Of a stretch of DNA of 64,000 nucleotides, positions 1,055-57,647 are shown piece by piece. Source of the stretch: Tubulanus polymorphus (taxonomy: Eukaryota; Animalia; Nemertea). Below the pieces are notes generated by a model. That model had not been told where the DNA came from, made no database searches, and worked only from the letters and a program-made list of their open reading frames with translations. A program made the position numbers and the translations under genes. The stretch lies in contig NC_134035.1 in NCBI RefSeq assembly GCF_964204645.1, forward strand, positions 9,766,451 through 9,830,450. The letters run 5' to 3'. Position 1 is the first letter of the stretch, and each line of letters begins with the position of its first letter.

Positions 1055-1790
1055 TCCGTATACATAATAACGTCATATGCAGAGATTCTGAACAGAAAGA
1101 AAAAAAAGGCGATCATTTTTTCGCGACGATTTTTTCACAGACTCTGAAATTCATCGTACGAATAACTTAACAATATGAAGCGACAGTTTCAAATTTCGTA
1201 ACAAATAAAACGAAAAATTATTTTTTTTGAACAAAATTTTGGAAAATTTTTTCAACATCTTTAACACGCTCGTGAAAAAACGGCTTACATTTTTTTAACG
1301 AATTGAAATCGTTTTTCCAGATCTCTCGGGTTTAATATTCGCACCCATCGATTTCAATAAATTTTCTATAAATTCAGACCCACTAACAGGATAAGATATT
1401 GAGATTCAAAAAAGAAATTTGAAAATGAGTCGAAAATCTCAGACTCGGAAAGCGTACGCATCTAAAATCCGACGGCAACATATCCTACGTATGCTAGCGG
1501 TACGTATAATTCTAACTATCGTGCGTTTAAAATCATAAGCTTTTCAAATACGAGAACGTAAAACATTTATGGGAGATTGTAAAAAACATCTGGGGTGAGA
1601 ATACTAATCAATTTTTTGTCTGCGGTTATTATTTATTGCCCGCCGTATGTTATTATTATGCGATATATTGAGATACTTTTTTTTTTTAAAGTCGAGTCAA
1701 TAAAATGTTAGTCGAATTTATGCCAGGCGAATGAAATCAGAAATCAGGGTTTGAAATAGAAAACGAGAAAGAGACGGCATCAGCCATAAA

Positions 1791-1823
<33 letters not shown>

Positions 1824-3534
1824 GGCGAGGATCATACGCAACCGAGAATCACTGATCTAGTATTCTTTTCCAAGCACATTCAAAAAGAGGGGGGAGAATC
1901 CATTATTATTTATTATCAATTCGTAAAATAGAAAACTTTCCCGGATTAAAAGCTTAAAATACGCGCGCATCGTACACGCAGGGTCGCGAGCGTACCGAGG
2001 GGTACGCCGGCGCCCTCTCGTGCGACGCGCACAAGCACAAACGCAACAAGAAATATGTACATTATACTCTGTTTTGTAGTTTTGTTTGTTGATTTACTTT
2101 CTATTTAGAGGCAGGATGCTGAATTTACGCCAACAGCCATTCGGGAGATGCCAATCAACAATACAGCTGGTGTTCCACTGGACGAATCAGCGGCAACTGT
2201 TCATCAGTTCGCGTTGCGTAAATTGCGCAACCTGCCCTTAAAATGAAATTTGAGCTTTCATTCATCATTTTTGAAATTTCGTATTACATTAAAGGTACAT
2301 ACTCAGACCTTGAGCTCATAGATAACACATACAAGAACACGGTGGCCTACTCTCAACACATTTGAACAAACGACTTATCGTTTAAAGACTTTCTTCACAA
2401 ACATTTCTTGCAGATCGAGGCGGATATTCTACCAAGCCAAACAAGGGCGGATTTCGGGTGCACTGGGCCAGACCTTCAAAATTCGACTGTGCCCTCCAAA
2501 AAGTCTGGAAAATCTTTTCTAGTAAAGAAAATTTTAAAAAAGACTAAAAACAAATCCAAATTGGCCCCTTTTTATCCTAACTTTTCTCTTGGAGGGCCAC
2601 CAGAACCCCGCAGTGTTTCCCTTGCAGACTTCGCATTGCCAAATCTGCCATTTTTGAATTTAGTCCAATTTTAGGTCCATCCCTTCATTAAATCCTAGAT
2701 CCGCCCTTTCAAAATTCTAATTAACTCAAAGCTAAAGCTGTAGACTTATCAGTCACAATAGAAATTACGTTTCGAAAAATTCGCTGAATTTGGTAAACAG
2801 TTTTCTAAAGATAGGATGGACTTCAGTCTTCAATATCTCTACGCGAATAGACACGGCAGATTTTGTATCGCAATGCTTCCGATGAGTCCAAACAGATGCT
2901 GCCACCGTGTAGCGAATCGCCGAACTACGTAATCATACAAATGTATATACATATATATATATATATACATGGTTACGCATCGACGACGATTTAAAAAAAA
3001 ACAAAAAACATTCATCTCGCTCTCGAATATTTTCGTAATTTAAAATTCCTTCTCGCGCGGCGGAAACAGTGAACTCGATAGTAGCTAGCGCGTAGTCAAC
3101 TGTAAATACCAGCTGACATATCATTAAGAGCGCAGGAGTGGATATTTGAAAATGTTTGCTTTGTAGCCACTCTCACCGCCGTGTATATACCACATACGAG
3201 ATATGTATAAATATGACCGGATTACCGTCGGGAATTATCTCTCGTCGAGAATAGACCGGCGTAGTTAAGTCGACGGAAGTTTTAAACGCCACTTTGCCCG
3301 ATGCGCGCAGCGGTACACGACACACCGAACGATAACAGAGAGAACGATTCCTCGGGGAGTGCCCTGTGATTAGCGAGACTTAACATCGTCGTCTGCTGGG
3401 TCCACCGCAAATCTATATATCATATACATACATATATATATATACATATACAACGCACGAGAGGTTTAATGTATAATTAACATCGCATTATCATACCGAC
3501 ATCAAAGTCAGTACGATACTTTCAGTTATATCGC

Positions 3535-3720
3535 GGCGCTGGCAACCTCTGAAAAGCGCTCCGAGTAACGTATTTTTGTTTTTCAGGAACATTTCATTGA
3601 AATATGAAAGAAAATGTTCGAATTAATCATCAGTAATCAACAGTAAAACCCTCAATATCATTACAAATAAATCGAATCAGTATTTCTCAGGACAAAATAG
3701 GAACAAAATACTCTGCTCTG
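3535..3720. mobile_element. Dispersed ~200 bp repeat (tttcattgaaatatgaaagaaaatgttc core); other copies near 5245-5457, 13240-13350, 13545-13678, 20420-20597
   Basis: Shared core in five places; ctgcca...tggcagct ends in two copies. Confidence 0.65.
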
Positions 3721-6700
3721 CTATCGTTTCGATAGGAATTTTATCATGATAGGCATTTTACAAAGAAAAAAAAAAGACGAACGAAAATATTCGTAATTCC
3801 AATTTTCGGCGTCGCGCTCAAATTCGAACACGGGCGATTCACGATAATCGATAGCTAAAAATAGCACCAGCAAGCGGCACTTCGACCGATGAAGTTGCGG
3901 AGGGTTTTAATGAATTTTTTTTATCTCGTCGACGTCGCACTCGTGTGACGACAAACGCGCGCGCGCGTAGGAGAGGGAGTACGTCGAGGGTTTGCGGATA
4001 ATCCGAATTCAATGACTCTCAACAATCAATGCCTTCTTCGTCGTCGTCGTCGTCGTGCGTTTCATCGTTACGCAGCATCGAAAAGGCCGACGACGACACC
4101 GTTTTTGATGGCCGATAAAACGAGGTTACCATGGTGATCGCGGCTGTTGAACGCGCTATATATGAGCTTAAGACCATTCATACATATATATATATATATA
4201 TATTTATAATATATATCTCTATGTTTTTACTGCTAAGTCAAAAATGTCTTTGTTAAATGCGATCGAAATATCTCGAAGATGATCTACTTACTCCCGAGTT
4301 GGGTTTACGTGTAGAGCAATCGATCAAAGTGTGAATCTTCCTTCGCAAAGCCCCCGCCCTAAACTTCCCTCCCCCAGGGCTGGATCTAGGAAAGTTGGAA
4401 GGGGGCCCCAGAAATGACTGGATAATTTTTCAGATGAAGCAGGGCGTTATAGATTACTAGCGGGGTTCCACCTTCGGTATAAGACATTCTTGAAGAAATA
4501 TGTCCGAAAAATATGCAATTTCCAAGATGAGTGTGAAATTTGTAGGTTTTCAATCTTTACTATAAAGGGCGACCACCTCAATGGAAAGGCAGGGGACCTG
4601 GACCGCGAGACCAACTCCTAAATCCGCCCCTGTCCCCGGTGCCTAGTTTATCTAAATACGCGCAAATTTGATAATTCGATACGACGTACGAGACGTTGAT
4701 TCGTCTTTTATTCCGTGTTCAATTAAATTCGTCGGAAACGTAATCCGATTTTCGGCGGCGGCGGAGAAAAAAAAACTCAATTTACCCCGTCGCGCATTTT
4801 ACACGCGCGCAGAAATGTCACGATTAGAAATGAATTGACGACGTTCGCGCTGCCACGGTGGCCGTTTTTAAAAATACAGAGCGAGATGATGAAGACCGAT
4901 ACGTAATGATTTCGACCGTTTTTACAAAAGATGTTCGACTGAATTTTCTGAGATTGAAAAGTTATCAATCGAATAGCGTATTTGATAAGAAACGATTTCG
5001 CAATAACGCCAACAGTTACGACAGTTGAGTGGAACCTCGTTACGATGAACTTCAGGGACCAGTTCCATAGTGACGGCTTGCCTTAAAACCAGTCTAAGAC
5101 AATATTAGTTCTATAGCCAATCTAATAATTGAAGACCAAATTTAAGCCCACTTTAAGACTTAAATATCGAATGTGGAACTGGCCCCTGGGGACTAGAAAC
5201 TCTTTTTTGTTATACCCAATAATGTTCTATACAGTATGAAGGTTAGGACTGCCAATCTCTAAAAAGCGCTTTCAGTTACATAATTGAATTTTTTTCAGTA
5301 ACATTTCATTGAAATACGAAAGAAAATGTTCAAATCAACAGTAAGGCCATCAGTAACATCTCTCATATTTCTGTACGCATCAAACAAATCCAATCAGTAT
5401 TTCTCATTATAAAATAGTAACAAATACTATCAATAATAATATCAGGAACTGGCAGCTTTGTCTTTATTTGGGACAAAATTCGAAGTTCGTTAATGAGGTT
5501 CCGCTGTTGTACTTTCGATAGTAAGACTACAGCTTTAGCATTGATTGAAAACATTTAGGGGAACAATCTTTCAAGGAATCAAATTAAATTTGACAAAATA
5601 TTCGAACATGATAGGGAATTAATACAAAGGAACCGTGTACGTAAAGTACGTACTGATTTTCGCGAATGCGCGAAAACAACGTAAACAAATCTGCCCGATC
5701 CGCACGAAGATGCTTTACAAATTATTCGAGATCTCCGTCATCTCCGTAAACAGCACGACTCGGTGTGCGCGGCTGTGATGCATACATAAGCCCTTGAACA
5801 TACACGATGAGGAAGCTGTACACGAGGACGTCGTCGTCGTCGATGTCTCTCTCTCCGTGCTGGTGAAACATCGACATATTGCGCAAGCCTCTACAACTCG
5901 ACGTTGTGATAGTCGTTTGAATGCCGCTGCTGCCGCTGCTGCTGCTGCTGCTGCTGGTGCATATTCACACTCTATCGCACTATGAATATCCGCTCCACTC
6001 ATTACCATAACTCCCTACGGTCACAATCAGTGGTCAGACGATTTTCCACCAGTATCGCTTACACTCATGACATATACGCACACACTGCCACCATCGCCGC
6101 TGCTGCTGCTGATGCTGCTGCTGCCGCCGATGCTGCTGCTTATTCGATATATGTATTACGAATATCGGCGTTGATTTATCGTATCGCCTTTTTTTTCGCG
6201 TATGATACGCGCCAAACGCCGACACGAGCGGAATCGCGAACGAACGCGGCGAACATAATTCCGCGCGCTTTCCCGCGAGATATTTCCAGCGGATATCGTC
6301 GTCGTCGTCGTAGATGAATTTATGGCCGTTAACTCCGCGAATAAACGCCGGGGCCGCGTGCTGCACTTTTTTGTAACGATACGAAAAACAGAAAATATAT
6401 TCCCGTCGCCGGGCGCGTGTTTTTTCGCGGCGTTATTATTTCGATGAATTTCTGATTTACGGCGACGGGTGAAGGTATCGTCGGCTGTCGTGTTTGTTCT
6501 CGTGTCGTCGCTGCCTTGTTAAGCGTATCCACCACCGGTGTCTAGGCCACACAGTCTACAAAGAATATTGAAATGAATTGTTATTTTTACGAACATGAAA
6601 ATTTTATAAATTTCCCCGCCAACATAACGATCATCGCCGAATGTCGGACAAACGTTACCCTCGCACGGAGCTTGGATTAGATACTGCTGGACAATGATTT

Positions 6701-8423: not shown

Positions 8424-8852
8424 CGGTATTTTGCCAGATGTCAAATTCAATGAGTTTTCGCTGATTCATAGATTTTTCCGAGGCCCTGTGTTTTCCAGGT
8501 CACACTGAGCAATAGAGCTGATAGCAAATAAGAAACGTATCTTTTCAGAAAGAAAGATCACTCCCGGTTAGAACCTCGAGGAGGTACGAATCGAACGTAT
8601 CCGCGCTGCGCCTGAAGAAGAGATTGCTCGCGGAGAGAGGAATGGACAAAAACCGGGAATTATGAATACGCGCATTTACTATAAACACATAATGCCACGT
8701 CGTCGTGTATCTCGAAGCAGCCGGAGATGATGCGATGACTAAGACGAACAATAAGACACAAGTCTCAAGTGTCGATGCAGACCTATTACTACAAGAAGAC
8801 AGACGGCATGAAAGTGACTAGCGAGCGATGGAAGGAGGAAGTATCGAAGAAA

Positions 8853-47792: not shown

Positions 47793-49391
47793 TCACACGT
47801 CCGTCTCGATGCTGACACTGTTCACCGGCGAGTAGTGCACACGCGTGCCCGAGCCCGGGTTGTTCGACTTCGAACTACTCGTGTGGTTCTGCTTCGTTCT
47901 GTCCATGATTATCATGCCCTCCTCCATCTCCATGATGTCCGACACGCTGCCCTGCGACGACTCGGAGCCGCGTTTGCCGCGCGGGAAGTTCGGACACGCC
48001 GTCTGCACGTGCACGTAGTTCTGCTTTTCCTCGTTATCCGTTTCGCGGTGGTAGAAATAGTTGAAATTGGACACAATGACCGGCACGGGCAACGCGATCG
48101 TCAACACGCCGGCTATCGCGCACAACGAGCCGACCAGTTTGCCCCAGACGCCGATCGGGCGCATGTCGCCGTAGCCGACGGTCGTCATCGTCACGACCGC
48201 CCACCAGAACGCGTCCGGTATACTCTTGAAGTGCGAGTTCTGCGAGTCGGCCTCGGCGAAATACACCGCGCTCGAAAACAGTATAACTCCGATGAACAGA
48301 AAGAAAATTAGTAATCCGAGTTCGCGCATGCTCGCCTTCAGAGTCTGACCCAAGATCTGTAATCCTTTCGAATGTCTCGACAATTTGAAAATTCTAAAAA
48401 CGCGCACTAATCTTATAACCCTGAGTATAGCTAACGACATTCCAGGGTTGTTGCTCTTGCTGTCGTCGGCGATGACGGTGCCGAGCGTAATGAAATAGGG
48501 AATGATAGCAACGATGTCGATGAGATTCATTATATTTTTGAAGAAGCCTAATTTTTCGGGACACGACGCGAATCGCACGAGCAACTCGAACGTGAACCAC
48601 ACGATGCACGCGGTCTCGATGACGAAGAACGGCTCGTTGAACTGCGGTATGTCGTCCTCCTCGATCGACTCCTCGCTCTGGCCGATCGTCTCGGTCGAGT
48701 TGATCACGCGGTAGTGTTTGAATTCCGGTAACGTTTCTAAGCAGAATATAACGATGGAGACTAAAATCACCAATACTGAGAATATAGCAATAATACGAGC
48801 GGGCATCGAGCTCTCCGGGTACTCGAACAGTAGCCAGACGCGCCGTTGAAATTCGTTGTCGGGCAACTGTTTCTCGGGCTCTTTGATAAATCCTTCGTCC
48901 TCGCGGTACTTCTCGATCGCCTGGTCGCCGAGTTCGTAGAATTTTATCTCCTCGGAGAAGACGTCCAACGGCACGTTGACGGGTCGCCGTAGACGCCCGC
49001 CGCTCTGGTAGTAATACAGTATCGCGTCGAAGCTCGGCCGGTTGCGATCGAAGAAGTACTCGTTGCGCAACGGGTCGTAATATCGGTTGCGCTTCGTCGG
49101 GTCGCCGAGCAACGTCTCCGGGAACTGGTTCAGCGTTTTTACCTGCGTTTCGAAACGCAGCCCGCTGATGTTGATGACGACCCTCTCGCACGAGTCGTAG
49201 TCGCCGAACGCGGTGCCGCGGTCCACCTGCGCCAGCAACGTCTCCGGTTCATCGCTCAATTTCGGAAACGACCTGGAATTTGGAAGAGTGGACGATTGGT
49301 TACTCCGATCCCGATTCATCATACGCGCCGTATTATAAGTAGGTGGAGGGCCACCGTTGCCCCCCTCTAGCCCAGCCATAGCCACTTCCAT
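47793..49391 (-). CDS. Sh: Shaker-family (Kv1/KCNA) voltage-gated K+ channel alpha subunit, 532 aa, uninterrupted ORF from MEVAMAG
   Basis: T1 domain ([15 protein letters not shown]...[21 protein letters not shown]), S4 ([21 protein letters not shown]), pore TTVGYGD, S6 PVP and C-terminal PDZ ligand ETDV. The ORF track starts at GTG 49586. The first in-frame ATG is 49391 (aagATGG), giving [10 protein letters not shown], which matches the Aplysia AKv1 N-terminus as I recall it. Confidence 0.97.
49273..49292 (-). other. Internal (exonic) 3' splice site in Kv1 CDS
   Basis: Minus strand reads tccactcttccaaattccag|G TCG TTT CCG AAA TTG: pyrimidine tract plus CAG, phase 2, directly before SFPKLS. 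Confidence 0.7.
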
Positions 49392-50112
49392 CTTTTGATT
49401 TTTAAACTGTGGACGAAGAACGGGGGTAAACCCCCACTTCTCAATAAAATCTAATTTCGAAATTTTGATTACGTTTATAACTATACTAGGCAATAGGCGG
49501 CCGAACCCGTCGTTAATAGCAACAACAACGCTTCGAGCGGCCCTACGACGAAAACCATCGAAAGAAGAAACTCTCGACCCATCCACTTTCGAAATCTGTC
49601 ATTCTATAATAATAACATCCAGTGCAATCGTGTTTAAACATCTAAACTCCGGCGGACGAATTTTAGTCCGTATCAATCGAGCGGACATCTTTTTTTTCTC
49701 GTGCTCGTTTCGGAAGAAGCCGTCGTCGCCGTCACACGCCGCCTCGCGATGGTTCCTCGAATCAACCGGTTATATCCCGACGTTACGACAAATACACACA
49801 CTACGTGTTTAAATACGTATTATAGTGATAGCTACGTGAACGAAATCGAACCCCGTCGTCAATAATAATAAGTCGGTATCGTCGCTTATGATTGTAGATT
49901 AGGGGTGTGTGCAGAGCCGTTTTATAAGACAGTACAGAGTAGTGATCGTGACAATTTTGGACGTAGAACGCGCTATATCGACGCAACGTGTGCCTAAATA
50001 AAACTAACGTATCTCTAGGCTACAGCTCTCTCTAGTAATGACAACATCAGTACTATACTAGATATAGTAGTAAAACACCACATCTAATCATAGATCGTAA
50101 TAAATAACTCAC

Positions 50113-50225
50113 ATCCCTGTTGCTGCTGCTGCTGTTGCCGATGAAGCATCATCGTTTATGATATTATTAGTATTAACGTGTCGACAATACGAACATATTA
50201 ATAACTTGAAAGGCGCTTTCACCAT
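50113..50225 (-). CDS. Putative alternative Kv1 5' exon (MVKAPFKLLICSYCRHVNTNNIINDDASSATAAAATG+M), or a non-coding leader exon
   Basis: 37 codons plus AT, donor |GTGAGT, phase 2. Confidence 0.4.
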
Positions 50226-50299
50226 CGAAACAGGTCATCCGATGACACTGACAGCCATTCTAACTCGAGCTATCATCAAATCTTCATGGCTCTAGCTAT

Positions 50300-50891
50300 A
50301 GCTGGAGTGTGTGTACTGTAATGTGTAGTGGTGCCAGTAGAGAAGTAGCGCGTTCATAGCCACCAACACCGCCAGAATAGCGGTGATCAGGCGCTAATCG
50401 GTCGCGATATAAACCGCGTATAAGATTCCCGGTTGCTTTCGAAATTCGCGATAAACGATACCGACGATTATTAATTCGTTAAAAACAGGAAATCTATCGT
50501 AGATTTAACCGGTTGATTTCGAGGAAAAAACAGCGACGCAAATTGTGCGGCGCTTATTGGCGCGCAAGGATACAGTATACTGGCGGTATACTAGCTGAGC
50601 TTACCCGGCTTCATACAGTCCGTCAGCGCGCACCTTGCACGGAATGTACGGAGAGCCGTATGAATTAACGACGGACTGCGGTAAGGGGTGAGCAGTTAAT
50701 TGGTAGTTCAGTTTATAGCGTGTGTTGGCTATGGCTTCTTAGTTTAGAGCTAGTTTTGCGTGGAAAATCGTCGAGAAACAACCGTTCGTGGTCGGACCGT
50801 GATCGCAAACCGACTCGTATCGAACCGTTGAAGTGATTACTGATTAAAATCGTGCACTAACACCTCGTGAAGATACGGCTAGACAATAAAA
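50300..50891. promoter_or_regulatory. Probable divergent promoter/leader region between Kv1 and SNRNP70
   Basis: The two start codons are 1.5 kb apart in head-to-head orientation. The region is CpG-containing and free of the repeat families common elsewhere. TSSs cannot be located. Confidence 0.45.
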
Positions 50892-51029
50892 ATGACACAA
50901 TATCTACCACCCAATCTACTGGCACTGTTCGCGCCTAGAGACCCTATTCCTCACCTACCGCCCATCGAGAAAATTTCGGCGGAATTGCGTCCGTACACCG
51001 GCGTGGCTACTTTCCTGGGACAATTCGAG
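50892..51029 (+). CDS. SNRNP70: U1 snRNP 70 kDa protein, first coding exon ([18 protein letters not shown]...GQFE)
   Basis: Diagnostic U1-70K N-terminus; aaaATG start; phase-0 donor GAG|GTAATG. Confidence 0.96.
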
Positions 51030-51470
51030 GTAATGTCACCCTACTGCTTGTCTTTATTTTATTCGTTTGTAACTTGTCATGCTTTGGGTTGGACGAGAAG
51101 AGAGCCGGAGAAGAAGGGACCTGCTGCCGGGGGCGGTGTGGCGGTGGGGTGTAAAAACGATAGAATATATAAATATCAAGCCATATTAAAGTCCGGTGTT
51201 GTTATATAGATGTAGTAAAAATTAGACGAGAAAATCGATTAAGATTGATTTTGTAAGTAAAGGAAAAAGCGCAACGTTTTTTTCCGATTTCAAAAACATG
51301 GACGGATAATGAAATGAGAAAATGAGAAGCGATTTTTGAAAAGTGCTCGACACGCAAATACGAAATATATATATATGAATATAGGTTTTTATTCCCGGTT
51401 AGAGAGATGTAGATATTATAAAGATATATATAGAGTAAAATTGTAAGATTTTTAGCGGTTGTCAACTTAC

Positions 51471-51511
51471 AAATTATTGTCGAGAATGGTCGATACTATC
51501 GCTGATGCCAT
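51471..51511 (-). CDS. Putative short alternative Kv1 N-terminal exon (MASAIVSTILDNN+L)
   Basis: ataATGG context, 13 codons plus TT, donor |GTAAGT, phase 2. Confidence 0.4.
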
Positions 51512-51537
51512 TATATATCATATACGGGTAGTTCCAG

Positions 51538-51575
<38 letters not shown>

Positions 51576-53473
51576 TGTTAGTAGCTAGATCCGTAAAATT
51601 AGCTTGATTGATTTGCGCGACAAACGATCATCAATTTATTTGCGCGAGGTGAAATTTTGATCAGATAGAATTCTTCTCTCTATGAAATTTTTTTCGTTTT
51701 TTTTACATTTTTGAAATTTCTAAAAAAAAAACTACGCCTACACTAAATGCGGAGCCCTATAGTAGCTGTTTAAATCATTAGCTATATATGTATATTCTCG
51801 GCACTCGAGAGAGAGATATAGTAGTGAAGCCTACAACGCGCGCTCTCTCTCCGCCGCGCAAAACGGTCGTTTGCGCGAAATCAAACGCAAAGACAAGCGC
51901 GCTTAGTCCAGCTGTGTTTCGTGATAGGTTCGGATCAAAAACAGCTGCTCTAAAGGATTAAAATCAATCGCCGGTTCAATGTGTATTGTCTGATTTCAAA
52001 ATGTTTCTCGCGATGACGGCCGGTAGTCTGGCGCGCGAGAGTTTTGGTGTGTGTGACTCGTCGCTGCTAGTCGTGTTGTAGTGTCTATTGTACGTCGCTG
52101 GTGAGTTTCGACTAAGCCGACCTGTTCGTGTGCATTCAGCCAGCAGCTCGTGTCGTCGTAGTCGTCGTGCGTTCGATTGTAGCCTCCAGATGGCGGACTC
52201 GACTTGAGGAATAAATCAATCCGGGGCTGCATGAGACATCGTCAGCGTATTTCACACGGTTACGACGACGACGACAACGTTATTAAACGGCGATCGTTTT
52301 CACCGCGGTCATTTTTAATCCGTGTCATTATTATTATTATGTCGCGCGTCGACGTAAATATCACCAGTTCGTACGAACGGTTAACGTTTTAAAAACTAAA
52401 ACAATTGAATAGACGCGCGCTGGCGCTAAAACGTTCGTACTCGTAGAAATAATCAATGTCCCCCGCGCGTGTTGCGGTTATTAACGATGACAATAGAACC
52501 CGATCGTTCCGATAGTTACATCCAGCGCGCCGATCGATTGTCCCCGAATTCGCGCGTGATTCGGTCGGTCGGTCGGTCGGTCGACAGAGAGAGAGATCGC
52601 TACGCGTTCGTTCGACGGTTTATATTCCGTTCATCGCGAGGATGATCCACGGAATGATGATTGCAGCCAGCCCATCTGCCGCCAGTAGTGCGAGGACAAC
52701 AGTATGTGTGTATATATGTACGCGCGCGAGGAGAGAGAGCTCGGAGTGTGCGTGTGTGTCACAATACACAATATAATAGTGATACTATTTAGTAGATACT
52801 CGATTTGCATATTCAAATTCTATTGGTAATTGCATCAATGCAAGGTGCAACCAATTATGTACTAGCATAAATATTTTATTAGTGTTAATGTAGACTGAAC
52901 AGTGCGCGTATCGGCTCCTAAAACTGTTTAGTTATCCGACATTGCGACGCATTGGTTTTTGCGCGACGGCGCGTGTTTGCGCGATCTGATCCGATTGATT
53001 CCGATTCGGCTGGGATTTTGATTTAAATTTTATCGTCAGTATTTAATAGAAATTGAACGCGTTGAAAATGTCGCGCTGGTTATGAAGATGGGATAAACCC
53101 TAAGGAGATCGGGGAATTTGGCCGTGGGGGTTGGAAAAAATTTCGTACAGACCCTGTGCTGTAATGGATGCCTTAATTTCCACCGCGCTTGCATGAATTT
53201 CAATTTGTGAAGAATGAATTGATTGTTAGATTCAAAACCTTGAAATTTCTCTGATTCACTCGGGGAATTTTGTGTAATCACGTGAAAAGCTCAAAAAGAA
53301 TTTATAATTCTTATATGGGCAGAAAGTCGCCACCCTGATTATGTTTTAGTCATGGACTCTTAAGTTAAGGGAATTTCTGCTTCCCTGATCTATATATAGT
53401 TCCTGTTGAACTTAGTCATTCATTATGTACGATTTATCCCGGTAGCGATTTTATGGGGTAGTTTTACAAAATA

Positions 53474-53754
53474 AGCCGCGATCACATGTAAGCATTTTTG
53501 GCCCAGAACGACTGTTCACATGGCCCGACCGAAAACGTTGGACCAAGTCCGAGCCAAATATTAGCACGGGACAATTGATTGCAACTGGTTCTCGAAATGA
53601 TTCCACTTCACTTTAGTATGAGCATTGTTTAGTTTCGAGTGAGTGGTTTGTTTACGTGTGAACGCGTTCTCTAATTAGGCACAAGCCAAATTTGGCTCGA
53701 GCCTGATCCGTGCCAGTTTGGACGGGGCCGAATCATCTTCGTGTGATTGCGGCT
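53474..53754. mobile_element. Harbinger-like MITE (agccgcgatcaca...tgtgattgcggct); copies near 21559-21834, 34988-35265, 39273-39582
   Basis: TIRs, ata/ata flanks, shared ctaattaggcacgggccaaatttgactcgg core. Confidence 0.75.
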
Positions 53755-54488
53755 ATAGTATGCAGAACCAGACTCTCTCTTTCCCAAGATCTATATTGTG
53801 ATTATCCCAGAAATTTTCATTGAAAAGCGATCATAACGCTGAATTTTAATGGGGATGAACTTTCTCCGTCAGAAATATCAACATCTGTTTTAAAATCCAG
53901 ATCGATATAGTTTTAGAATTAATGTCTATATGTCGAGAGTGTGGGTGTTGTATACTCATTGATCTCCAAACGGGATCAAGTCATGTTTGCATGTGTTCAT
54001 TGGCACGGTGGCCACTGACCTGGAAAACTCAGCATTGATTATGGAATATTGATTTTCAAGATGGGTTAAAGCAATATGAATAGTAGTATCCCGGATAGCA
54101 GGGTTCCACATCGTTCCCCCCTTACATTTGAGATAACATTTTCACTACCTGGCTTCAGTGAGTTATGCATACAGTGGCAAATGATTGCTGGCTGTGTTCT
54201 CTAATCGATCTCTCTAATCACTCTAGGAAGTGATCCATTTAAAAAAAGACCCCGTAAAGAGACTTAACGTCTGCCACGTGTGTCAAATACGTATAGAACT
54301 TGGCCGTTTAGATGTTTTGTCCCCCCCCCCCCCCCCATATTCAAAATTCCCAGATCCATCCCTGCTTAGTGCGAAACACAGATTTAGCTAGTCGTTAACT
54401 AAGTGAAGGTCTCTACGTTGTAATATTTCTAACAGTCTATTCTAGCTGTGTTGATATATTTGTGGTTGTTGTAATCGTTAATTCTTAC

Positions 54489-54787
54489 CTGCGCTGAGAT
54501 TTCGTCGTCGTCGCCGTGGTTTCGTCCGCGTCCGACGTCATTTGCTCGGTCGAACTTTTCGGCGACGTCGATTTCGATTTTCGTTTCGAGTCGCGTTTTA
54601 AAGTATCTCCGTCGTCTGTCGTCGGCGCCGACAGCAGCGGCTCGGACGCGCCGCCGTCGTCGCGTTTCACCGGCGACAGGTCGAACGACTCGGTCGGTTT
54701 GTCGTCTTGCGTCGCGTCGACGCGGTTCGTTTCGCCCTCCTGCGGTGTCGGGCTCTTCGATTTGCGATTCAACAATTTGCGATACAT
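54489..54787 (-). CDS. Putative alternative Kv1 N-terminal coding exon (MYRKLLNRKSKSPTPQ...TTKSQR), antisense in SNRNP70 intron 1
   Basis: 99 stop-free codons plus AG, then strong donor CAG|GTAAGA (phase 2). GC-rich codons like the Kv1 CDS. Phase-compatible with the internal acceptor at 49272. A possible upstream acceptor attctcttttag| lies at 55168. Confidence 0.65.
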
Positions 54788-56402
54788 GTCGCCACCGGGG
54801 GGCGTGTTAGCTCTCTCGGTTCGTACGTTCGTTCGGCGTTCACCGGCCGGCAACTCGCGACATCGAACGTCCCTTCACCCGAATTCGTGGCTACAAATAT
54901 ACGGCATCGTTTGTTTCGTAGCTACGACACCGGCGGCCATCTTGGATGATATGAATCTTCTTATAATCGACCGTGGAACGCGCGCGGAACGGACGACAAC
55001 GTCATCGCCTATAAATCCACGTCGCGCAAAATGGCCGTCGATATATCTCTCCGTTCATTGGATAGTCTTCACTGTCGATAGATCCGCGCGCTCGTGGCGT
55101 TTCCGGTTTTCGAGCACCCGCGGCTGAACGTCGTTCTTCCCGCGGCGAATCGGATTTTCCCGTCCACCTAAAAGAGAATGATCGCTGTTTTATAATATAT
55201 GTATATACGTCGAAGTCTTGGTGGTGGCGTTCCTCGTGCGTTTCGGTTAGTTCGATCGATTTTTGCCCGCGGCGACGGTTATCTTTTTCGAACCTCGAGC
55301 TCTAATCATCGCGCTCGGCGATCCTTCCGTTCTTTACCTATATCTATATCGACTTTTTCGTTTAATAGACTTTTATACTGATGCTAGTAGCACGTTCGGT
55401 CGTCGGTACTGAAACCCTGCGTGTATATTCCTGCGTATTGTGCAACACGCGCGTACGTATGTATCTATGTGTATGTGTGTGTGTGTATTACGAAGGTAGA
55501 ACATTCTTCTTCGGCGAGCGAGAGAGCTGCTCCCCGCTATACCTTCACCAACATGTGTAACTTTAGACGAACTCGGCGATAAAGTGTCGGATCTAAAAAT
55601 GGCTCAATAAACCCCCCGAGAACTAGTTAAAACTCAAACGCAAAACGGCTAGAATAGAATCGGTACGCTCGATTTGTGGCGTGCAGGTAATTATGCTGAA
55701 ACTTTTCCTCCACCGCCTACGAAAACTATTAGTTTTACTATTCTTTATCGGGAATGGCCCCCGATGTCAGGCCGGGGTCATAGGGTATTGCGATGAAAGC
55801 GTTGTTGCATTGCGCGTGGGTTGAATTATATGGTGCAAAGATATTTATACTTGTTTCCCCCTATAGTGGCAGCTGGGGGAGGGGGAGGGGGGGGGGTAAT
55901 GCAGGTGAAGTTGTCCTTAAAGTACATGCTGTCGATGACCGGGTTACCGTGCATCAGGGGATTTTGTATCTAAACTTCCCTGCATCGGGAAATCAGGGAA
56001 TTTATTTTTTAAATTTCCCCGCAAGGAGTTCGGGGGGGGGGATCTGGGTATTTTCTCATCGCGATCTGCAGAATTCTGAGATAGAATCGTCGGGTGATTG
56101 ATACCTACTCGACGACGTCCCGAGAATTACGATTCTAATTATTTATCAACGAATGAATGAGCAAAATCCGAATGATTTATTCTGACGGCTTCACGGTTTT
56201 GAGTAAATTTCATCGTCGGATGAATAGATTCATGAGCGACGATTATGTAGCCGTTTTATTGTCGTGTCAGATAATTTACGGGTTTTTTGCTTAAATTTAA
56301 CTCTTGAGCAAACTGAGATCGACGTCAATCTGCTGCCGGTTGTCGTCGACGGACTTTCCTAAAAAAAAATGATTTTTTACATTTCTGTTTCGCTATTTGC
56401 AG

Positions 56403-56465
56403 GACCCGAAGGACACGCCTCCCCCGACACGCGTCGAAACTAGAGACGAAAGGAAAGAAAGAAAG
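56403..56465 (+). CDS. SNRNP70: SNRNP70 coding exon 2 (DPKDTPPPTRVETRDERKERK)
   Basis: tttgcag acceptor, 63 nt, AAG|GTGACC donor; matches U1-70K DPxDxPPPTRxETR. Confidence 0.94.
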
Positions 56466-57647
56466 GTGACCAAAAAAAAAAATTATACTTCTCTTATCTT
56501 TTTTTTTCGCCGATTTGACGCAATAGATTCGAAAATAGAACTAATCAATAGTTGTCGATAAACGCATACGTTGCACTTCAGCTGTAGTCGTCATGTCTTT
56601 GGGGGGTTTAATTTTTTTTTTTTTAATTATTATTTCGCGGGTAACGTTCTAAGAATCGTCCCGTCGATTGGTGATAAAAATTCTACAGAAGCTGGAAAAA
56701 AGTGTTTTTGATCTTTCCGCCTGGTTGCTGACACCAGCTTGTGTTAATGTATGTTTCCCACTTGTCGCCATTGATTTTTTCTTTTTTTCTGGAAAGGCGG
56801 TTCCTTCTTTAGTGTTTGAAATGAAACATGACGCCGTACGCGTTGTACGGTCGGAGAGAAAAAATTGATAACTAGGTTAATTACAGTCAAACACGCGGCA
56901 ATTGATTTTTGATAAGTCGTATTTAGTTTTGCCTCGAAGAAACGACTTGATTTTCTGACTTGAACCGCGACTAATGGACGAACTGCGCGTTGAAATACGG
57001 GGGTCCCTACGATTCCTTAAATCCTAAAAAAACTTCTAAGCAGAAAGTGCCTTTGAAGGTGCTTGAAACGCCTTTAATTGGAGCCAAAACGTCCTCAAAT
57101 TTGAGAAATAGTCAATTAGAAATTGTCTAGTTTGTAGGCTGTACATTAGACTTCACCTAAATCGGTACAGTTGGGACCAGGATATTTTCTTTACCCAATT
57201 AGGCAGTTATCAAATTAGAAACCTAGTTTAGGTAATATATAGGATAGTCGCTGGGTCACTGAATCAATGGTTTACCGAGATAAACAGTACCGATTCAGGA
57301 GTCTATAATCAGGGATATGAAGTGATGCGGACACTTCCGTGAAATTTGAAATTTTCTCCTTAAAAACTCCTAATATCCAGGAACAGGGTTCATAGCGGTC
57401 ATTGAAAGTCATGAAATGGGAATCGGTCAATTCAAGGCCTTGAAAGTCATTAAATTGCTTCTAAAGTCATTGAATCATGGTCATTAATAGCGATCTACTT
57501 TACTACTGATGAATAACCGGTCCGTATAGGGACCCCGCGGTGGAAACTTTGCGACCCTTTTTTTTTCTTTTTTTTCTAATCGAGAATTCGACTGTTTCTC
57601 GTATGCGTATCGACTTAATGAACCTCTCTCGTTGTTTATTTTCGCAG

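Follow-up and report, generated by a model that had tools for sequence, protein, structure and literature searches.

Alternative N-termini joined at one particular junction to a common channel core are textbook for Drosophila Shaker. The alternative 5′ exons of this gene were described by Schwarz et al. 1988 and Kamb et al. 1988 (as cited in PMC3634772 and PMC3519636). There, several alternative N-terminal exons are attached to a single constant core, always at the same residue position, (R/G)|S-L/F-P-K-L, and the insect Shaker isoforms in our protein search table (P0064-P0073) all diverge exactly at this point. We describe here a comparable locus in a stretch of 64,000 nucleotides (nt) from the nemertean Tubulanus polymorphus (assembly GCF_964204645.1, contig NC_134035.1, positions 9,766,451 to 9,830,450 of the forward strand), called the window throughout. 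Its minus strand carries a Kv1/Shaker gene and its plus strand the gene of the U1 snRNP protein U1-70K (SNRNP70), and we consider it likely that two distal Kv1 start exons lie antisense within intron 1 of U1-70K, which would give three N-termini on one Kv1 core.

A different type of Kv1 gene is represented by Aplysia AKv1 and vertebrate Kv1.4, whose products carry the ancestral N-type inactivation domain (Kv1AnID) that Prince and Pfaffinger defined by the residues E2 and E9 (PMC3634772). The proximal isoform of the window gene begins with MEVAMAGLE and has both residues, as AKv1 and annelid and mollusc sequences do (PMC3634772). The same paper describes genes that carry the ancestral ball as simple, often having just one exon, and places complex alternative splicing in Ecdysozoa, while PMC3519636 contrasts protostome splicing with the intronless cnidarian and mammalian genes. 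In contrast to this simple type, the window gene and its relatives also carry conserved alternative N-terminal exons. The window gene is also unlike Drosophila Shaker in that its proximal N-terminus is contiguous with the core, so that the acceptor falls inside coding sequence, in that it keeps the MEVAMAG ball reportedly lost in Ecdysozoa (PMC3634772), and in that its distal exons would lie inside another gene.

A further likeness is found in NCBI models of Haliotis rufescens (isoform X1, P0023), Pomacea (X1, P0039), Crassostrea (X5, P0048) and Lingula (X2, P0059), where long disordered N-termini, carrying basic R-R/K-x-S clusters, are joined at (R)SFPKL. However, these models are automatic and come without published analysis, the long exon of the window is much shorter than theirs and without detectable sequence similarity to them, and the short exon described below, of the MATIV type, is in none of the listed named models. 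No paper dealing with the short MATIV N-terminus, or with an overlap of Kv1 and SNRNP70, came up in our literature search.

The Kv1 core and its internal splice acceptor

The main exon of the Kv1 gene occupies 47793-49391 on the minus strand (ATG at 49391, stop codon at 47793-47795), as delimited by its open reading frame (ORF), Pfam matches and an RNA contig, and for the proximal isoform this one intronless-looking exon holds the whole coding sequence of 532 amino acids and the stop. The predicted protein has a T1 (BTB_2) tetramerisation domain followed by a six-transmembrane ion transport domain with a K+ pore, the architecture of the Kv1 class (BTB_2, 1.9e-27; Ion_trans, 1.8e-53; Ion_trans_2, 5.8e-15), and shares 74-83% identity with named Kv1/Shaker proteins. 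It is the only close Shaker orthologue in this genome, the next paralogue being 53% identical. The N-terminus MEVAMAG(L/I)EGNGGP is conserved and contiguous with the core in Capitella, Owenia, Elysia, Bradybaena and many other spiralian sequences retrieved by protein search.

Three sequencing runs (X1-X3) were compared with the window as contigs, a form from which rare isoforms drop out. Two of them behave as DNA, X1 by its continuous long contigs and X3 by a contig that crosses the boundary between SNRNP70 exon 1 and its intron. The remaining run, X2 (tissue not stated), behaves as RNA: its contig of SNRNP70 exon 1 continues as exon 2, and much intergenic and intronic sequence is without coverage. 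A further run, X5, guessed to be RNA, gave no contig that could be placed on this stretch. The X2 contig of Kv1 (record 9, 1831 nt) is colinear with the genome from below 49168 to 49506, so that the abundant Kv1 mRNA starts near 49506 and is unspliced at 49272; a proximal promoter is likely to lie directly upstream of 49506.

Inside the reading frame, precisely where an earlier note on this DNA had seen it, stands a phase-2 acceptor at 49273/49272. This putative 3′ splice site, ctcttccaaattccag|G (49273-49291, minus strand), recognised from its sequence and its conservation, reads ...ttccag|G TCG TTT CCG AAA, with the G at 49272. Across seven genomes the codons before the junction are (CTT/ATT) CCN AAT (ACT in one genome) TCC AG|G, with TCC and AGG invariant, and the codons behind it vary, serine being written with three or four codons, phenylalanine with two and proline with three. 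Since AGG and TCC each account for about 17% of the codons in their synonymous family in these genes, the invariance of TCC AG|G fits a conserved YAG|G splice site within coding sequence, and the comparison indicates that the acceptor is under constraint at the nucleotide level. Its position corresponds to the S-L/F-P-K-L junction of Shaker-type genes, at which many mollusc and Lingula models in the protein search table likewise diverge exactly, and a complementary DNA (cDNA) of another species, L002, is joined exactly at the point equivalent to 49272. With this comparative support, the proposal of the earlier note that one Kv1 core receives several N-termini through an acceptor at the equivalent of the SLPKLS junction is very probably correct.

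Candidate start exons within the U1-70K gene

Four frames on the Kv1 strand had been put forward in that note as alternative N-terminal exons: 50225-50113, 51511-51471, 54787-54489 and 54940-54879. All are open at these coordinates, begin with ATG and leave two bases before a GT, and three of them fall, as claimed, within SNRNP70 intron 1, whose limits (51030-56402) are set by an RNA junction. As alternative exons of Kv1, however, only the second and the third have held up, whereas 50225-50113 belongs to another transcript and 54940-54879 has found no support. At the level of sequence the locus thus has what a Shaker-type gene should have upstream of its acceptor, namely ATG exons on the same strand with phase-compatible donors that are conserved in relatives, the short one in four genomes and one cDNA and the long one in position, phase and junction codon.

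The short first coding exon comprises 41 nt at 51471-51511 of the minus strand and encodes MASAIVSTILDNN plus the bases TT, followed by a phase-2 donor (TT|GTAAGT) that would make TTG (Leu) the junction codon. It can act only as a start exon, because an in-frame TGA stands three codons before its ATG. Orthologous exons of 12-14 codons, with the pattern MAT-IV-S/T-x-I-L/M-D/E-N, lie upstream of Kv1 and inside SNRNP70 in four other genomes, each on the Kv1 strand with an ATG and a phase-2 GTRAGT donor: in Capitella (L008 5684-5724, MATIVTSILDNMS TT|GTGAGT), in L004/L005 (L004 8621-8655, MATIVTAIMDS GT|GTAAGT), in Haliotis rufescens (L009 53338-53372, MATLVSAILET CT|GTAAGT) and in Owenia (L010 3472-3506, MATIVTAMMNT AT|GTAAGT). 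Their codons differ between species at synonymous sites. The exons were searched singly, except that the short one was given the first base of the acceptor exon so as to make its junction codon whole. The short-exon peptide of L002 has its best match in the whole window, both strands included, at 51511-51476 (tblastn, E 8e-5), and that of Capitella matches the window exon at E 7e-4. In the regions compared, each 10 kb holds only one to four short frames that begin with ATG and end at a phase-2 GTRAG donor, and no other one is common between genomes.

The use of such an exon is seen in the cDNA L002, whose protein (P0032) reads MATIVSAILDNL|SFPRI, that is, the short exon joined directly to the core. 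We take this cDNA to be 5′-complete because it starts with tatcaacgcagagtacggg, the text of a SMART template-switch oligonucleotide. The prefix MSNPTEG of P0032 is an artefact of the gene caller, which began at a GTG upstream of the true ATG. As L002 is 78% identical to the window Kv1, compared with 53% for the next paralogue in this genome, it is the transcript of an orthologue. A word-based search with residues 1-45 of P0032 retrieved only P0032 itself. Comparison with these orthologous exons and with the foreign cDNA indicates that the short exon is real, and the caveat of the earlier note that its short candidates could be chance can be set aside for this 41-nt exon, which has the best support of all.

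Some further features of this region and of other short N-termini may be recorded. In the window, a (GA)n tract of about 55 nt (51529-51583) lies directly upstream of the short-exon ATG. In L004 (8590-8660, plus strand) a cag|G acceptor stands directly before this ATG, which a perfect TACTAAC branch-point motif also precedes; the exon there is thus 36 nt long and symmetric in phase, and could double as an in-frame cassette after the long exon. A homologous stretch of L003 that has no ATG (8625-8680, plus strand) could form a symmetric cassette of 48 nt. The other short N-termini found in the databases, MGSSLSCFR, MLWPHYKNLLLCFR and the insect MQMILVAGG, have no counterpart in the window. The first is joined at the same junction in one sequence (MGSSLSCFR|SFPKL), as is MSCFR|SLPKL of a louse (P0094 and P0096), and the Gly2 and Cys residues of this type are suggestive of lipidation.

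The long first coding exon would extend over 299 nt at 54489-54787 of the minus strand, with 99 codons (MYRKLLNRKSKS...TTKSQR) plus AG and a phase-2 donor, CAG|GTAAGA, which gives the junction codon AGG (Arg), as in the proximal isoform. The 5.4-kb intron contains a single AGGTRAG site on the Kv1 strand, and it is the site that terminates this frame. Of 2000 Markov-shuffled versions of the intron, 0.05% produced a frame of at least 99 codons ending in this way (P ~0.0005), as did 0.04% of 5000 when the local GC-rich composition was simulated. The GC content of third codon positions (GC3) is 0.74, against 0.75 in the Kv1 coding sequence, with 0.51-0.52 at positions 1 and 2. A codon log-likelihood ratio (LLR) trained on the Kv1 coding sequence reaches +36 in the proposed frame versus -57 and -23 in the other two, and its positive signal spans about 54817-54503 and breaks off at the donor. 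The block is present in a single copy.

The related loci L003, L004, L006, L008 and L009 have long open frames at the equivalent position, with the short exon on one side and SNRNP70 exon 2 on the other. Those of L003 (AG|GTAAGG), L004 (AG|GTAGGT), L006 (AG|GTGAAC) and Capitella (AG|GTAAGC) all end in phase 2 and all recreate the arginine junction codon, and the long exons of L003, L006 and Capitella are homologous to one another (E 1e-7 to 1e-12). In Haliotis, the isoform X1 contains a long exon (P0023 residues 8-137, L009 49959-50348) that lies within SNRNP70 intron 1. Between the window and these relatives the shared features are short motifs only (GDMYRKL versus SDMYEKV, and basic R/K-x-S clusters), and homology of the long exon is argued from position, phase and coding statistics only. 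We judge it likely that the long exon is real, and donor site, codon statistics and position agree in making 54787-54489 probably an exon of Kv1, even without significant sequence similarity to its counterparts.

Antisense to the long exon, the plus strand has an ORF of 203 codons (54516-55127) with neutral codon usage (LLR +1.7). It probably results from the GC- and CpG-rich composition (GC 0.57-0.59, CpG observed/expected ~2.0-2.2). It includes ATTPAAILDDMNL, whose likeness to the short exon is weak, at chance level and on the wrong strand. A HMMER search with the long exon among 1.84 billion representative proteins gave two hits only, to TSP1 and RCC1 repeat proteins, which we judged compositional.

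The two exons would be embedded in a gene identified by its own domains and RNA. SNRNP70 exon 1 lies at 50711-51029 of the plus strand, with its ATG at 50892 and a match to PF12220 (3.2e-12), and X2 record 11 covers 50711-51030; orthologous models of Capitella, Owenia and Haliotis carry PF12220 together with RRM_1. Behind intron 1 (5.4 kb) follows exon 2 (DPKDTPPPTRVETRDERKERK, 56403-56466), of which positions 56404-56433 are exactly the text at the loose end of the X2 contig. Exon 2 is conserved in L003, L004, L006, L008 and L009, as exons 2-4 are with relatives, and in these five loci with exon 2 located the homologous intron 1 measures 3.1-8.8 kb. If the distal Kv1 exons are used, their coordinates (51471-51511 and 54489-54787, minus strand) place them within the plus-strand intron 51030-56402 in a nested antisense layout.

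In the arrangement that we propose, transcription of Kv1 would begin at three or more points. From a proximal promoter near 49506 would come the unspliced mRNA whose protein starts with MEVAMAGLE, the ancestral N-type inactivation ball. Two distal first exons on the same strand, a short one (51511-51471) and a long, disordered and basic one (54787-54489), would start within U1-70K intron 1, each ending two bases into a codon and being spliced to the AG|G at 49273/49272. Distal splicing would replace the first 40 residues and leave the T1 domain and the pore unchanged, and the intron removed from distal transcripts would hold U1-70K exon 1, the shared promoter region and the MEVAMAG segment. 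Splicing of the distal exons to 49272 would be expected to occur in this species, the different N-termini may change inactivation or trafficking, and U1-70K transcription may influence how far the distal exons are used.

The idea of an antisense overlap that encloses the SNRNP70 start exon in a Kv1 intron gains comparative support from the other genomes, the foreign cDNA and the overlapping Haliotis models. In L003, L004/L005, L006/L007, Capitella and Owenia, SNRNP70 exon 1 and Kv1 are placed head-to-head, with 1.0-1.2 kb between that exon and the Kv1 ATG. Haliotis has the same head-to-head order, and the synteny that the earlier note had wished to see checked in related genomes thus extends to five of them plus Haliotis. 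In Haliotis the annotated models of Kv1 (10001-56195, plus strand) and SNRNP70 (1-53613, minus strand) overlap by more than 43 kb, and the order is that of the window: SNRNP70 exon 2, long exon, short exon, SNRNP70 exon 1, Kv1 main exon. That the head-to-head pair persists in six genomes would be explained most simply in mechanical terms, since any rearrangement that parted the interleaved exons of Kv1 and U1-70K would break a gene; interleaving, rather than regulatory coupling, may have kept the two genes together.

The internal acceptor is shared by annelid and mollusc Kv1 genes, of which several share the short exon and most have a long exon in the matching position. Exchange of N-termini at the Shaker junction may therefore predate the split of protostome lineages, and this evidence runs opposite to the view of complex N-terminal splicing as an ecdysozoan development (PMC3634772). 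The short MATIV-type N-terminus would be a concrete new isoform, and the locus offers a natural case in which to ask whether housekeeping antisense transcription limits the distal promoters of a neuronal gene.

Competing explanations of the upstream frames

Several observations weigh against the arrangement proposed here. The Kv1 contig of X2 reads straight through 49272, no joint to 49272 appears among the contigs of this sole RNA-like run, a form of data from which rare isoforms drop out, and X2 has no coverage at 51168-51967 and 54568-54767, the regions of the short and the long exon. In L006/L007, where coverage of intron 1 is complete, no short exon was found, and the similar stretch at the homologous place of L003 lacks an ATG. 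For the long exon, BLASTP against the long exons of relatives gave a best E of 0.46, profile hidden Markov models of annelid and/or mollusc long N-termini did not single out the long ORF among six-frame segments of the window, and the search of 1.84 billion proteins with HMMER showed no significant similarity to the long exons of relatives either. Between X1 and the window the long exon has five single-nucleotide polymorphisms, three of them synonymous and two not, which are too few to speak of constraint. The absence of similarity and of X2 coverage would suit the explanation that only the short exon works here and that 54787-54489 either is a decaying remnant of the ancestral long exon or belongs to an unrelated antisense transcript, as would the observation that the frame is about 60 codons shorter than those of relatives, their ancestral start MP.YD..AREQF being seemingly cut off by a TGA. 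Decay, however, would not keep 99 open codons with the GC3 and codon usage of Kv1 right up to the donor, nor the AG|GTAAG phase-2 junction of the family, and we hold this explanation to be unlikely. The read-through from 49506, with no alternative junction seen, could also mean that Kv1 is here a simple single-exon gene, in agreement with PMC3634772, where such genes are called structurally simple, and that the upstream frames are unused relics or chance. Yet the short exon has kept its ATG, open frame and consensus donor after long divergence, the synonymous sites of the acceptor are frozen, and the foreign cDNA and the Haliotis gene model show such exons in use, all of which makes a single-exon gene very improbable.

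At the other extreme, all four frames might be alternative N-terminal exons of Kv1, given that every one is ATG-initiated with a phase-2 donor and that the donor at 50113 is demonstrably used in RNA. This donor, however, is joined to an exon 53.6 kb away and not to 49272, which removes 50225-50113 from the Kv1 exons proposed in the earlier note; its frame (113 nt, GAT|GTGAGT) has a codon LLR of -18, that is, non-coding usage, and no homologue was found in relatives. The frame 54940-54879 (MAAGVVATKQTMPYICSHEF, 62 nt, minus strand) has a weak donor, CGG|GTGAAG, and no coding signal, and a low-depth X2 contig (54862-55078) runs across the supposed donor at 54879, which speaks against an independent exon; it may serve the long exon as a 5′ leader, or may be what is left of the start MP.YD..AREQF that the exon has in relatives. 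That all four frames serve Kv1 is hardly credible. A bolder extension of the arrangement with two distal exons would be that the interlock of Kv1 and U1-70K is ancient, at least spiralian and possibly older, and has been kept for function, antisense U1-70K transcription gating the choice of N-terminus. If this were true, heavy and ubiquitous U1-70K transcription through the distal Kv1 promoters and exons would decide whether the Shaker current of a cell inactivates, and Kv1 would have in the short MATIV N-terminus a second ancestral N-terminal domain, so far undescribed; we consider this extension quite unlikely.

The divergent transcript, the proximal leader and other features

The donor at 50113 closes exon 1 (50113-50502, minus strand) of a separate two-exon transcript, within which the 50225-50113 frame is contained. 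It is represented by X2 record 10 (1574 nt, depth 137), which leaves the genome exactly at 50113 and continues as G000:C11:9762975-9763004 (L001:1501-1530), 3.4 kb before the window and behind a ttcag acceptor. The second exon covers L001 347-1530 on the minus strand (G000:C11 ~9761821-9763004), and the 53.6-kb intron encloses the entire Kv1 gene and everything in window 1-50112. The longest ORF through the junction has 62 codons, an AATAAA about 20 nt before the inferred end fits a polyadenylated end, and the 5′ end lies about 210 bp from that of the SNRNP70 transcript, on the opposite strand. This transcript is probably non-coding and diverges from the SNRNP70 promoter. By its position near the SNRNP70 5′ end on the other strand, its good expression and its ORF of only 62 codons it resembles the promoter-divergent long non-coding transcripts of housekeeping genes, from which it differs in being spliced across a 53.6-kb intron that contains Kv1.

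The 5′ leader of the proximal MEVAMAG transcript (49392-49506, minus strand), where the X2 contig ends at 49506 without a splice, is conserved in L004 (9884-9988) and L006 (9899-9970). Upstream of MEVAMAG its frame reads KISKL-D/E-F-I/L-E-K/R-WGFTP-V/I-LRP in the window, L004 and L006, with mostly third-position changes, and it carries a GGGGG-N4-CCCCC hairpin with stems kept and a variable loop. Because the frame is shifted in L003 and interrupted by in-frame stops in Capitella and Haliotis, and because of the hairpin with its variable loop, the leader is more probably a 5′ untranslated region or promoter element than a coding N-terminal extension. In several database proteins (P0008, P0015, P0038) the gene callers have carried the reading frame on through this leader. 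RWGLTPVLRP occurs in a model of Drosophila subpalustris (P0067), and relatives also have the motifs CCGCCATATTG and TGACGTCA directly upstream.

Human KCNA7 and SNRNP70 are presumably neighbours on 19q13.33, an adjacency not used here as evidence, and our literature search on a Kv1/KCNA7-SNRNP70 overlap or microsynteny found nothing relevant. Within SNRNP70 intron 1, positions 53168-53767 are occupied by a high-copy repeat, with a summed contig depth of 1100-4600 in the DNA run, compared with about 30 elsewhere, and many loose ends. Over 2361 bases (49168-51528), in which lie SNRNP70 exon 1, the shared promoter and the 5′ region of Kv1, the DNA run X1 matches the window without a single difference; across the rest of intron 1 (51584-55158) it differs from the window by about 1%, in single-nucleotide polymorphisms and small indels.

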